In this document: piece by piece, positions 18,173-51,781 of the stretch
Layout of the letters: every line of letters starts with the position of its first letter
How positions within the stretch are numbered: the stretch's first letter is position 1
Assembly: GCA_020137815.1 (NCBI GenBank)
Contig: CM035354.1
Span: forward strand, 6,696,001 to 6,760,000
Direction of reading: 5' to 3'
Source: Hormiphora californensis
Taxonomy: Eukaryota; Animalia; Ctenophora
DNA: 64,000 nt
Program-made: the position numbers and the translations under genes
Notes under the pieces: model-generated
The model's database searches: none
Told to the model about the DNA's origin: nothing
The model's input: the letters and a program-made list of their open reading frames with translations, nothing else

Positions 18173-21100
18173 TCACAGTCTCCGTACAGGTTTCTTTGGA
18201 ATCTTGGGTAAGGGCATTGGCATCAAGTTGAGCGTGTTCTGTTTAGGAGCGGGAGGAGGTGGTGGAGCGGCTGATTTCCGGCCAGCTGCCTGCTTTCCTT
18301 TACCATACTTGTACTTATCGAAGTTAGCACTCTTCCCTCCGGCTGGTTTGTTGCTATTAGCAACAGCCGTGTTAATCCACTTTCCATTTGTACCACTGCT
18401 GCTAGTATCATTCCGGGCTGCTTTTCCTCCTGGAAAGTTTTTCAGGACCTTCAGGAACTCTGCTCCATAGAAATCAACTTTGAGCCTAGTAAATCCTGTG
18501 ATCTGTAAGAGTTGCGCCCTGGTGTGTGGTCGGACCTCGCTTAGCTCGTGAAGTGTATCATTAGGCAGGATATTATGAACCGCAACTTGTTTAGTGTCTG
18601 CAATCCCCTTCCTGCATGTGAGAAGGGCTTCATAACAACACGCCACGACCTTGTCAACATTACTATTTTGTCCTGATGACGTAGCACCATCATTGTTAGT
18701 GACATCCTTCTTTCTATGAAGCTCCACATCCATCACAAACTTCTGGTTTGTTCCAAAATGTTTCTTCCCCACATCCACGTAACTGATCACCATGCCATGT
18801 TGCCCCACCACAATACTCTCCTTGAGATAACTCTCGCTGACAAGCCTCCTCAACAATCTCTCAACCTCGCTCCTGTTGCTCGTTTTCAAGCTACCAAATC
18901 CTTGGCATCGAGCCAGCCCGGTACTTTGGGTCTTCTTGGACTCTGAACCCCGGAGAGCATCAGCCAGCATGATGATGGTGACTCGAGATCGGGCGGATTG
19001 GACCAGGTTGATGGCGGTTCGGGCCTCCTTGGACAAGTCTTTACTTTGGAACTTGCCCCGGTGAATGCAGTTATCACACGTGGTCCTGGCCGTCCTTCTA
19101 CACTCGTCAGAGGAAAACTTCTCGCCTGCGAGAGAGAAACAAGGTGAGGATAAGCGACATGGAGGTGGAGTACACCTGTACCCAGTGGAGTGGTTTGGGT
19201 TGTGGAGGAGTGGTTTGAGGCCTGGAGTGGTTCGAAACCTCTCAGAAAGAGGCGGGGAAGAGACCTCCCAGAGTGTATCACTTACCGAAGTAGGAGAGTA
19301 GCTGGGTTCTCCTACAGTCCATCCTGTTTTCACAAAACTGTACCATGTAGTTCAAATTATCAAAATGTACCTGACAAAAACAAGGGGTTAACAAAAAAAA
19401 GCAGGAAAAAACGGGAAAATCCGAAACACAAACAACAAACAAAGATGCAAGAATTATTCTAACTCAATCGTTATAAACTAACATGTCGTGTAGCCTTGCT
19501 GTTAGGTGAATCATCCATCATGATGATGTTCTTGATTCTACTGACATCACAGTAGTTGTACAGCAGGATGCAATCCGCCGGATCACCGTCACGACCTTGG
19601 GGAGAGGGAGTATTGGACTTCAATTCTGCCCCTTTTTTTTAGAATGAAGTATTTGCATTTTTTAAGTTTCGAGAAAATCGACTTTAAAGTTTTTTAGAGG
19701 GTTTTTCGGAACTAAAATTGTCATAGAAGCCCAAATAGTACGTCAAACGATTTATGACTTATACCACAAGAATCCTGAAGGAATTCTGCAGGACTTCCAA
19801 TTATCAGCTATCATCAAATTTGTCTCAAATTGATGTCAGGCATCAAAATTGATGCCTTACTCTGTTGGTTACTTCACTTATATTACAGTTTTGAAAATAC
19901 TTCCGTTGCTAGACTGATATCGACTGAAGCATAATTTTTCGTGGTAGATACTTCAGTAATTACTTCACTCAAAAAAATACTTCATCATAATAGCAACAAA
20001 AGCACCTAAAAAGTACTTCACTTGCATATACTTCAGTAATTACTTCATTCCTAAAAATACTTCTTCAGAACTGTATTCAAAATGCCTAAAAGTAACTTAA
20101 TCGAACAAAAGTGTACATGTGCTTCAAAATCGCAATCTTACTTCAATATTTTGGATAAAATCACAAACGAAGTTAATTTTCATTTAACACGCAGTGAAGT
20201 ATAAAATGTGTTAGAATTCTTGCTAGTCTTGAAAGTAACTCCAGAGCAGCAGCTGCAGACAAACAGACGCACAGACAAACAGACGCACAAATTACAACTG
20301 CAGCAGCCTGCAGCAGCCTGCAGCAGCATAAAGAGATGGGCCGCCCGCCCTTCGGGCGGAATGTTAAAATCATGGTGCTGATAAATTGAGCGAAAACAGA
20401 AAAACGCTATGGCAACCCTCAAACTAAGACGAACCTGCAGATAAAATCTGGAAGATTAATCTGTTCCGGTACGAGTCATACTTTGAAATTGGTTGAGTTC
20501 GGCTTGTAATATCAGAGTGAAACATGGAGATTGGAGATTCAAGAATTTTCTTCCGACCTCTACACAGGTCCGTGTTCATAAAATATGACAGACATACAAA
20601 CAGATCACAGACATACAAACAGATCACAGACAGACACACAGACAGACACACAGGCCAGTTCATTACATGTTTTAACAATCGATTAGCTGATAACCAGTCA
20701 CGTGACCTGAATAATGAGCTCGGATTGGTTGTTTATTTGGTCCGGTCGGTTGCTGAGAGATAGAGAAAGGGTCTGACAGAGAGATAATATCGATGAGAGG
20801 GAACGGGAGTGAGATTGTCTCCATTCGGGTTATTCACGAAGAGGAGTATTTGTCTAGGAGTGTGGGAATGTAAGGACAGAACAGTTAGATGACAATATAT
20901 TTTGTTAATATTTGGATGATTTGTATCCGTATTCTTTAATTTTTTACAAACATTTCAAATTCCCGTGAGTGTGATAGTTCAGTGACATGGGAGACAGTGG
21001 GAGGCAAAGTGACAGGGGTTACAATGGGAGGCAAAGTGACAGGGGTTACAATTGGAGATAAGGTGACAGGGGTGACAAAGGGATATAAGGTGACAGGCCC

Positions 21101-24100
21101 TCACTCACCCCCCTTCCCCAGGTCATCCTGCCTCCTAACTCACCCCCTTCCCCAGGTCATCCTGCCTCCTAACTCACCCCCCTTCCCCAGGTCATCCTGC
21201 CTCCTAACTCACCCCCCTTCCCTAGGTCATCCTGACCCCTAACTCACCCCCCTTCCCTAGGTCATCCTGCCTCCTAACTCACCCCCTTCCCCAGGTCATC
21301 CTGCCTCCTAACTCACCCCCTTCCCCAGGTTATCCTGACCCCTAACTCACCCCCCTTCCCCAGGTCATCCTGCCTCCTAACTCACCCCCTTCCCCAGGTC
21401 ATCCTGCCTCCTAACTCACCCCCTTCCCCAGGTCATCCTGCCTCGTAACTCACCCCCCTTCCCCAGGTTATCCTGACCCCTAACTCACCCCCCTTCCCCA
21501 GGTCATCCTGCCTCCTAACTCACCCCACTTCCTTAGGTTATCCTGACCCCTAACTCACCCCCTTCCCCAGGTCATCCTGCCTCCTAACTCACCCCCTTCC
21601 CTAGGTTATCCTGACCCCTAACTCACCCCCTTCCCTAGGTCATCCTGCCTCCTAACTCACCTCCCTTCCCTAGGTTATCCTGCCTCCTAACTCACCCCCC
21701 TTCCCCAGGTCATCCTGCCTCCTAACTCACCCCCTTCCCTAGGTTATCCTGCCTCCTAACTCACCCCCTTCCCTAGGTTATCCTGACCCCTAACTCACCC
21801 CCTTCCCCAGGTCATCCTGCCTCCTAACTCACCCCCCTTCCCTAGGTTATCCTGACCCCTAACTCACCCCCTTCCCTAGGTTATCCTGCCTCCTAACTCA
21901 CCCCCTTCCCCAGGTCATCCTGCCTCCTAACTCACCCCCTTCCCCAGGTCATCCTGCCTCCTAACTCACCCCCCTTCCCCAGGTCATCCTGCCTCCTAAC
22001 TCACCCCCCTTCCCTAGGTCATCCTGACCCCTAACTCACCCCCCTTCCCTAGGTCATCCTGCCTCCTAACTCACCCCCTTCCCCAGGTCATCCTGCCTCC
22101 TAACTCACCCCCTTCCCCAGGTTATAGACCATAGTCATAGTCATAGTCATAGTCATAGTCATAGTCAATTAACCCTCGTGGCTCCGAAGTTTCATCAAAA
22201 ACAGGGTAACGTGCTTTTAAATCACGTCCTGATAACAATAATTATTATCATAATAAAAACGGTTTATTGTAATTGCAATAGGAGAGACAAAACGAAACGG
22301 GTATACATTCAATGTACATGGTGGCTAACTAAGCAGCAGCTGCGTGTGGTGGGAGAAATGGCTTACCCTATATTTTTTACTATTTTACAACAAATGTCTG
22401 AGAGTGACAGAAACATTGTACAGCTGCAGCATGATACGATACACACGGATGTCCGTTAGCTACTATTTGAACTCCATGATGATGCTGCAGCAAAGAACAA
22501 ATCTTGGAAATTACTTCATTTGGCCGGACTTGTGTTATAAATGGCACATATTATAATAAAAAATGAAGTATTCTTAAGTTATGAAGTATTTTTTCTGGAT
22601 GCGACAAGAAGCATTTGAATTCCACAGATTTATGAAGCATTTTCAAATTGAAGTAAATGAAGTGAAGTATCTTCTGATTTGAAAATACTTCAAACAAAAT
22701 CTGCAACTGATTTATGAAGCATTTTCAAATTGAAGTAAATGAAGTGAAGTATCTTCTGAGTGGACAATACTTCAAACAAAATCTGCAGCTGATTGAAGTA
22801 TTTCAATAGAATTTTTTAAATGAAGCAAACAACTGAAGCAAATTTTTCTGCGGTTATTACTTCTATGGTAGAAAAGTTTAACGAAGCAGTATTTATTTCC
22901 GAATTATATTAGCGAAGCAATTGCCATTTGCTTCACTTTTCTGCAGTTTTTCAAAAATAAAAGTACTTCACAAAAAACACTTCACTCTATTTTTTGAAGA
23001 TTGAGACACGAGACTTAGCCCATCTTGTAGATCTTTTTCTCCTGATCAAGATGGTATAAATAACTCAAAATCGCCAAAATTGCAAATACTTCATTCTAAA
23101 AAAAAGGGGCAGAATTGTCATGGAGCAGTTTATTGAAGCAACTTTTGAATTTTCTGTCCGACTCAAATTGACCTCCCTCCTCTCTACCCATGCTCCACAC
23201 ACATTGATGCCCTCTACTCATGTCCCACTTACCAGCCCTGCCCCCTCAACCCCTGCCACTACTTACCAGCCCTGCCGCTCTCCTGGTAGAAGCCCTCCAC
23301 ACTCTTAGGCAGGGTGTGGTGTATCACAAACCGGACATCGTGTTTATCAATACCCATACCAAATGCAATAGTGGCACACACCACCGTTACTACATCATCG
23401 ATCCACTGTTTTTGAATGGTTGATCGTTGGATGTCAGTGAGTCCTGCATGGTAGGGTCTGGCTTGGACACCTCCCTGTACTAGGGCATCTGCACACTGGG
23501 GAGGGAGAGAGGAAGGGAGTGGTTAGATAACTGGTTCGGAGAAGAACACATTTGAGGTGGTAGTTCAAATATCAATTCCATCGCCATTATATATCCCCGC
23601 TCACGCGAGAAGAAAACAGATGAAAAGTATATTTACCTCCTCGCACTCTTTCCGAGAGAGACAGTAGACAATGCCACATTTCCTGGCATAAGACTTCTTG
23701 ATCAGCTCCAGGACACCGCTATAGTAGATCTTTTTAGGTTTTGGAGTCAGGATATATTTGAGGTTGACTCTGTTGAAACTCGTTATAAACCTGAAAAGAA
23801 TCAAGTCGGACGGCCACTCTACTATAACAGAGTACAGCTGTACTACTGGTAGTAATGCATCTGGAAAGAAACAACTTGACTTTGGACGGCCACATCTGAG
23901 GAATCTATATATTCTGTCTTTTTCAGACTCTCTAAACAACAACAACATGAACAGTACAATACCTACACTTTAGCGTTGTTGAGGACGAGATTATGTAGCA
24001 CATCAGCCCTAACACGGGGAGCAGCAGTAGCTGTCAGAGCCATGATTGGTACTGTACGGTAACTCTCTCGGAGTGCATGTAGTTTGGTGTAGTCGGGCCT

Positions 24101-51770: not shown

Positions 51771-51781
51771 TGCCTACAGCT

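Follow-up and report, generated by a model that had tools for sequence, protein, structure and literature searches.

Operons resolved by spliced-leader trans-splicing are already known from several animal lineages, and those of Caenorhabditis elegans, Ciona and Oikopleura mostly hold 2–8 genes, with spacers much shorter than those described below. The locus considered here lies in a window of 64,000 nucleotides from the ctenophore Hormiphora californensis (C5:6696001-6760000; host assembly of 110,691,255 bases in 45 contigs), in which eleven minus-strand genes with unrelated housekeeping functions follow one another head to tail. A preliminary description had proposed that this run is a polycistronic operon of ~33.6 kb, made up of one or a few long units and resolved by trans-splicing. 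At close to even confidence, we favour reading it as a dense co-oriented cluster that is a mosaic of several transcription units, with operon-type expression at its tight junctions.

The cluster resembles the SL2-type operons of C. elegans in that unrelated housekeeping genes share one orientation and stand one to a few hundred nucleotides apart, in the acceptor just before the downstream ATG and the poly(A) signal near the upstream stop, and in the enrichment of mitochondrial and RNA-processing genes. It differs in that the nematode operons use a specialised second leader for downstream genes and have intercistronic distances of ~100 nt, whereas the stop-to-acceptor distances in the cluster are longer and more variable, being 115–260 nt where they are tight and up to 920 nt otherwise. 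Tunicate operons (Ciona, Oikopleura) share with the ctenophore a single leader class for monocistronic and operon genes, a compact genome and a very short distance from leader to ATG, but their intercistronic regions span 0 to tens of nucleotides, and none of the ten cluster junctions is so tight. The operons of Hydra and chaetognaths likewise belong to non-bilaterian or early-branching animals, whose leaders evolved independently and in which a minority of the genes lie in operons (PMC3273482, PMC12460157). Their polycistronic precursors are documented by cDNA or long reads, whereas those of the candidate cluster are predicted from sequence. Finally, trypanosomatid units resemble the cluster in their long same-strand runs starting from a divergent strand-switch, their spacers of hundreds of nucleotides and their coupled trans-splicing and polyadenylation, but they cover nearly the whole genome, whereas only ~50% of neighbouring genes are co-oriented in a roughly read 200-kb block of the ctenophore genome.

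Gene models were built by hand from a six-frame stop-to-stop reading and GT-AG chains, with start and stop codons checked, and the gene identities were tested with Pfam, one exon at a time. A dicodon coding model trained on leader-bearing contigs, intended for the 200-kb block, was discarded, as it missed known exons, e.g. in RGP1. The eleven consecutive minus-strand genes of the preliminary description were recovered, and its gaps agree within 1 nt with the re-measured stop-to-ATG distances, which from 5' to 3' are 924, 687, 644, 358, 163, 458, 256, 202, 250 and 271 nt. The spacers thus fall into five of 163–271 nt, two of 358 and 458 nt, and three of 644–924 nt. The head-to-head start of the run was also confirmed: it is bounded by a divergent junction at ~51.8–52.1 kb and by a convergent junction at ~17.9–18.2 kb, and its gene density is ~3 kb per gene compared with a genome mean of 7.8 kb.

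The first gene of the run (all genes in this and the next two paragraphs are on the minus strand) is STEEP1 (ATG 51770, stop 50237; feature 50237..51783), identified by a Pfam STEEP1 match of 8e-11 in exon 51137-51307, and acceptors ttctcag|, ttag| and gtag| precede its ATG by 13, 9 and 3 nt, with CTAAC at -47 from the acceptor. The sideroflexin gene SFXN follows as a single exon (ATG 49312, stop 48332; 48332..49314), matches Pfam SFXNs over its full length (2e-133), and is 76% identical to its orthologue in Bolinopsis microptera (XP_063692955.1) and 73% identical to that in Mnemiopsis leidyi (ACHWQZ_G008849, KAL5263619.1), two lobates in which gene order is otherwise scrambled with respect to Hormiphora. 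Its acceptor, cattctag|gcATG with CTAAC at -25, was found exactly as first quoted, as was that of BLM. On the two sides of intronless SFXN lie a (CT)n-rich dispersed repeat of ~135 bp (49534-49677) and an inverted copy of it (48182-48261), members of a family that forms arrays, both tandem and inverted, at dozens of sites in the genome. The third gene is PWWP3A/MUM1-like (ATG 47644, stop 45263; 45263..47697) and has weak Pfam matches, all of them under the curated cut-offs (PWWP/MUM1-like PWWP, 5.7e-05 and 24 bits; PWP3A-B_C, 3.4e-04 and 21 bits). Its acceptor, tacctag| at 53 nt before the ATG, is the weakest of the eleven, and an in-frame TAA stands immediately 5' of the ATG.

NDUFA13 (GRIM-19) has four exons (ATG 44618, stop 43234; 43234..44620), with a Pfam GRIM-19 match of 6e-8 in exon 1 and the acceptor gtcttctag|gcATG. 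In RGP1 (ATG 42875, stop 41065), for which Pfam Rgp1 matched two exons and a ctenophore relative of 371 amino acids (aa) shows 52% identity, the AG directly abuts the ATG (gtgtttag|ATG) and the pyrimidine tract is weak. The next gene encodes a MINPP1-like histidine acid phosphatase with a signal peptide (ATG 40901, stop 39221; 39221..40949; Pfam His_Phos_2, 5e-14), preceded by the acceptor ctccttcctag| at 48 nt before the ATG; the junction between RGP1 and this gene is the tightest of the run, with 163 nt from stop to ATG and 115 nt from stop to acceptor. CWC22 (ATG 38762, stop 33188; 33188..38769) comprises arginine/serine (RS)-rich N-terminal exons, MIF4G and MA3 domains (Pfam MIF4G at 7e-12, MA3 weak) and an RS tail, and has the acceptor ctttttatag|cctcatcATG with CTAAC at -20. 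Its RS-rich exons (38762-37200) link to the MIF4G exon by a consistent in-phase intron chain, though they could instead represent a separate twelfth gene, which is the sole soft point of the models.

Importin-11 (IPO11; ATG 32931, stop 28313; 28313..32940) was identified by Pfam TPR_IPO11 (7e-15, exon 29653-30036) and has the acceptor ctctcacatag|ctctaccatATG. It is followed by the two-exon UQCR11 (ATG 28110, stop 27728; 27728..28112; Pfam UCR_6-4kD, 2e-5), with the acceptor ctctatatag|ccATG and CTAAC at -24, and by the three-exon MRPS36/KGD4 (ATG 27477, stop 26965; 26965..27572), which has a weak Pfam Kgd4-YMR31 match, the C-terminal end LGGLPE* and acceptors at 19 nt (ccatctag|) and 95 nt (ccttctcag|) before the ATG. 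The last gene encodes a BLM-type RecQ helicase (ATG 26693, stop 18173; 18173..26702; Pfam DEAD, RQC and HRDC), with the acceptor ctctctctag|ctcaacaaaATG and CTAAC at -23.

Because an AG within 55 nt before an ATG is trivial, a stricter definition was adopted, namely a YAG (Y being a pyrimidine) with at least 10 pyrimidines in the preceding 15 nt, and binomial p values were calculated against the 577 remaining ATGs of that strand in the region. Such a site was present at most 10 nt from the ATG in 7 of the 11 genes, compared with 8.1% of the control ATGs (p=6e-6), and at most 60 nt away in 9 of the 11, compared with 33% of controls (p=0.001). CTAAC, counted 12–55 nt upstream of the chosen acceptor and set against its frequency at positions, occurred in 6 of the 11 genes versus 6.1% (p=2e-5). 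The acceptor-like AGs with pyrimidine tracts and frequent CTAAC branch points that had been claimed in front of the ATGs are thus borne out, the weakest being those of RGP1, MRPS36 and PWWP3A. As the enrichment of YAG with pyrimidine tract and of CTAAC far exceeds chance, the predicted pre-ATG sites are, in our assessment, real splice acceptors. Their predicted distances to the ATG include 2, 2, 2, 7, 9, 9 and 9–13 nt, and the first base after the acceptor is mostly C.

That the host organism uses spliced-leader trans-splicing, as had been supposed, is well established. The 22 nt at the 3' end of the H. californensis leader, as published, were found in 667 genome copies, compared with 0 for the reversed control, none of the copies being located within the window. 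Ctenophore leader trans-splicing has been known since Derelle et al. 2010 (cited in PMC8527503), and the H. californensis genome paper, based on a 110-Mb assembly in 44 scaffolds, describes 718 leader copies and Iso-Seq reads of which at least 56% carry the leader (PMC8527503). A scan of metagenome contigs using the leader's last 24 nt yielded at least 120 contigs, mostly from marine metatranscriptomes of the Joint Genome Institute (JGI), nearly all of which start with the leader and which are 88–98% identical to the genome where mapped; these are leader-capped mRNAs of pleurobrachiid ctenophores. Among the contigs listed, the median distance from leader to the ATG of the main open reading frame (ORF) was 16 nt in the 110 that were measured (37% at most 10 nt, 61% at most 20 nt), and the first base after the leader was C in 52% of these 110. 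The leader-to-ATG distances match the predicted acceptors of the cluster. From stop to contig end, the leader contigs listed had a median of 267 nt (interquartile range 148–443). Frame 1 of the leader is open and would read ...KQINLS... before the Met, the phase being right in CWC22 and MRPS36 only; a query with such a leader-encoded N-terminal extension of MRPS36 matched nothing in a protein collection that apparently lacks this genome and its nearest kin.

Two of the leader-bearing contigs, both from other loci, show that these animals contain RNA extending across two neighbouring genes of the same strand. The first (L085, Ga0314687_10101402; 1339 nt) consists of the leader, gg-ATG, a ubiquitin-RPS27A frame of 153 aa, a 154-nt spacer, an RPL13 frame of 216 aa, a 32-nt 3' untranslated region (UTR) and poly(A). 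Both proteins were confirmed by Pfam, and an AATAAA overlaps the RPS27A stop. The contig maps to the minus strand of C1:4696132-4698159 with 92–98% identity; from RPS27A through the spacer into RPL13 exon 1 it is colinear with the genome (92% identity), it lacks the three introns of RPL13, and at least 8 of its terminal A's are untemplated. In the genome, RPS27A is preceded by the acceptor tttatttag|ggATG, and the spacer contains ttttatctag|ggactgg 35 nt before the RPL13 ATG, an acceptor that is conserved while the middle of the spacer has diverged. Each of the three genomic RPL13 introns carries a -TAAC- just upstream of its acceptor. RPL8 lies ~270 nt past RPL13 on the same strand, with the acceptor ttctctag|ccATG. 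The surrounding minus-strand region, C1:4694632-4699659, is a ribosomal-protein cluster, with a further small ORF after RPL8, and the contig is RNA evidence that its genes are co-transcribed. The second contig (L041, Ga0123365_1245453; 5680 nt) contains, besides the leader, two complete G-alpha ORFs separated by 1.6 kb, with another 1.8 kb after them. It aligns colinearly to C1:8335250-8340873 (88% identity), where the two G-alpha genes (355 and 360 aa) are intronless and arranged in tandem. Three other candidates for two-gene contigs, containing Hsp70 (L076), a tRNA synthetase (L043) and Nop (L111), turned out to be single genes with frame breaks.

In the spacer of the cluster that follows UQCR11, an AATAAA overlaps the stop and a GU-rich stretch comes next, followed by acceptors 155 and 231 nt past the stop, a layout that, as read from the predicted signals, matches that of the RPS27A-RPL13 spacer. 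Between IPO11 and UQCR11, a long GU-rich tract is followed by a pyrimidine-rich stretch with CTAAC and by tatag|ccATG, and in the spacer between CWC22 and IPO11 an AATAAA lies 62 nt past the CWC22 stop. The five gaps of 163–271 nt are about as long as one ordinary 3' tail (median 267 nt in the leader contigs listed), and the earlier argument that several gaps are too short for a 3' UTR plus a promoter finds support in these five. The three 5'-most gaps are easily wide enough to hold promoters. Throughout the gaps, TATA-like motifs and CpG content were at chance level.

Taken together, the cluster is real, and its trans-splicing has strong sequence support, with leader addition expected at the predicted acceptors. 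The 5' ends of all eleven mRNAs would be formed by splicing at acceptors that lie 0–53 nt in front of the ATG, the added sequence most probably being the known 44-nt leader. The wide 5' gaps (924, 687 and 644 nt) probably carry promoters of their own. At the tight junctions, i.e. RGP1>MINPP1 (163 nt), CWC22>IPO11 (256 nt), IPO11>UQCR11 (202 nt), UQCR11>MRPS36 (250 nt) and MRPS36>BLM (271 nt), RNA polymerase II probably continues past weak or short upstream 3' ends, and capped monocistronic mRNAs would then arise from cleavage and polyadenylation of the upstream message together with trans-splicing of the leader to the following acceptor. These five junctions of at most 271 nt are credible but unproven candidates for operon junctions; the RPS27A-RPL13 contig and the operons of nematodes and tunicates serve as models for the operon-type read-through that probably occurs there. 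A more specific claim, which we hold tentatively and somewhat below even confidence, is that these are true leader-resolved ctenophore operons, in which at least CWC22-IPO11-UQCR11-MRPS36-BLM, and perhaps RGP1-MINPP1, are polycistronic from an upstream promoter.

The principal rival explanation is that the run is an ordinary compact cluster, in which each gene has its own small promoter and a short outron that is replaced by the leader, while co-orientation is due to chance and no functional co-transcription takes place. We regard this as a serious contender, albeit on balance a doubtful one, and a number of observations speak for it and against operon-type expression. With random orientation of the 14,265 annotated genes (PMC8527503), ~7 runs of at least 11 co-oriented genes are expected by chance (N/2^11), and since many windows were scanned in addition, the 11-gene run is not significant alone. 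One unselected 200-kb block (C1:3.0-3.2 Mb), read roughly from ORFs of at least 110 aa, an earlier list of at least 150 codons and a few Pfam checks, contained ~22 genes, of which 11 of the 21 neighbour pairs were co-oriented, including one ~8-gene run on the plus strand. Because about half of the pairs are co-oriented, there is no sign of a trypanosome-like strand-block architecture genome-wide, in a sample that is too small to reveal a nematode-like minority of operons. The acceptors do not indicate an operon on their own either: as at least 56% of the Iso-Seq reads bear the leader, they restate a property expected of most genes here, and do not separate an operon from a row of individually transcribed, trans-spliced genes. 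Gaps of 160–920 nt can accommodate core promoters in compact genomes. Furthermore, the Iso-Seq-based manual annotation of H. californensis reported no operons, the word itself being absent (PMC8527503), ctenophore operons are not reported (PMC7986045, PMC8527503), and full-text literature searches found no later report of them.

The RNA evidence is subject to reservations of the same kind. None of the genes in the window had a match among the at least 120 leader contigs listed. The two dicistronic contigs are short-read assemblies, and the reads that bridge their genes could derive from nascent read-through RNA or from DNA. Assembly can also go wrong in such data, as seen for a third contig (L083, Ga0247578_1022378), a chimera in which the leader and RPL21 are joined to bacterial rpsL-rpsG (S12, S7); its RPL21 part is 97% identical to C11 (L159 = C11:7636075-7639541), while the S12 and S7 genes are absent from the genome. 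A chimera of this ctenophore-bacterium type is ruled out for the RPS27A-RPL13 and G-alpha contigs because both are colinear with the genome. At the genomic RPL21 locus, an APC10/DOC-like ORF lies ~180 nt downstream on the same strand. Searches for leader-headed retrocopies with the start of UQCR11-MRPS36-BLM and with NDUFA13 matched only their own locus, broader searches of the genome against itself being swamped by repeats.

What argues against wholly independent genes is the size of the five short gaps, which do not exceed a typical 3' tail, so that little is left once the upstream 3' end and the next tract and acceptor are accounted for, and the leader-capped dicistronic contig at a junction of similar length (154 nt). 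In addition, mitochondrial proteins account for four of the eleven products (SFXN, NDUFA13, UQCR11 and MRPS36), with UQCR11 and MRPS36 adjacent. This excess is nominally p ~0.01 if ~8% of genes are mitochondrial (our own estimate), but as a post hoc observation it proves nothing about transcription.

That the whole run is a single 33.6-kb polycistron, transcribed in trypanosomatid fashion from a divergent promoter at ~51.8–52.1 kb on which the ten downstream genes would depend, is very improbable, and this part of the original proposal is not upheld, while its variant with a few units may be right. The eleven co-oriented genes between one divergent and one convergent junction, with an acceptor at every gene, would fit such a unit. 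The run is nevertheless within chance expectation, and the three 5'-most gaps of 644–924 nt, which hold microsatellite and dispersed repeats, are roomy enough for promoters, both of which make one unit of this length unlikely. It would also contain a recently inserted 3.5-kb transposon, the unselected block is without sign of genome-wide strand blocks, and eleven genes with such spacers would go well outside the known range for animal operons given at the outset. Similarly improbable is that the acceptors are cis-spliced to unrecognised non-coding 5' exons in the gaps without any leader, which may apply to individual genes, especially PWWP3A, RGP1 and MRPS36 with their weak or distant acceptors, but is at odds with the leader on so many Iso-Seq reads (at least 56%; PMC8527503), with its joining 2–20 nt before the ATG in real leader-capped mRNAs, as predicted here, and with the shortest gaps, which cannot fit a 5' exon plus an intron.

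If the tight junctions do belong to true leader-resolved operons, these would represent the first operon class described in Ctenophora, and a further instance in which operons evolved independently after leader trans-splicing was in place. Ctenophores would then join nematodes, tunicates, flatworms, chaetognaths and Hydra, which would strengthen the idea that lineages with a leader able to cap downstream cistrons readily evolve operons. The annotation of ctenophore genomes would be affected, the published annotation having been repeatedly troubled by fused transcripts, as would the assignment of promoters and enhancers and the design of transgenes. New in the present analysis are the acceptor and branch-point statistics, the estimate of how often such a run arises by chance, and the RPS27A-RPL13 contig with its two cistrons.

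The divergent junction at the 5' boundary of the run (51771..52131) is a candidate shared promoter region of 361 nt between STEEP1 and its plus-strand neighbour, a gene that starts near 52.1 kb. It is AT-rich (35% GC), and its minus strand carries TATAWA motifs (52035 and 52008), no more of them than expected by chance. At the 3' boundary, a plus-strand tubulin gene with its stop near 17872 stands tail to tail with BLM. Rfam and tRNA scans detected no Rfam families and no tRNAs in the window, and no part of it resembles human sequence. Beyond the divergent junction, within the region of the plus-strand neighbour, lies a perfect palindrome (~52487-53715), whose ORFs 52521-52898(-) and 53304-53681(+) are mirror images encoding the same 125 aa.

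The transposon mentioned above is a DNA transposon of 3.5 kb with terminal inverted repeats of ~40 bp, which is located in a BLM intron (19621..23118) and is not a component of the cluster. More than 20 copies, 96–100% identical, are found on many chromosomes, which indicates that the element is very recently active. Retroelements were encountered together with the leader. Four of the contigs (L063, L074, L077 and L099) consist of the leader, an ORF1 and a long ORF2 of the long interspersed nuclear element (LINE) type, so that leader-headed retroelements are transcribed. A genomic leader copy at C1:3080865-3081918 (L024) is followed by a 333-aa ORF and, being 82% identical over 1 kb to a leader-capped contig (L050), is regarded as a leader-headed retroposon. 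In one further contig (L122), GTAAGC comes right after the leader, as expected of a leader RNA gene.

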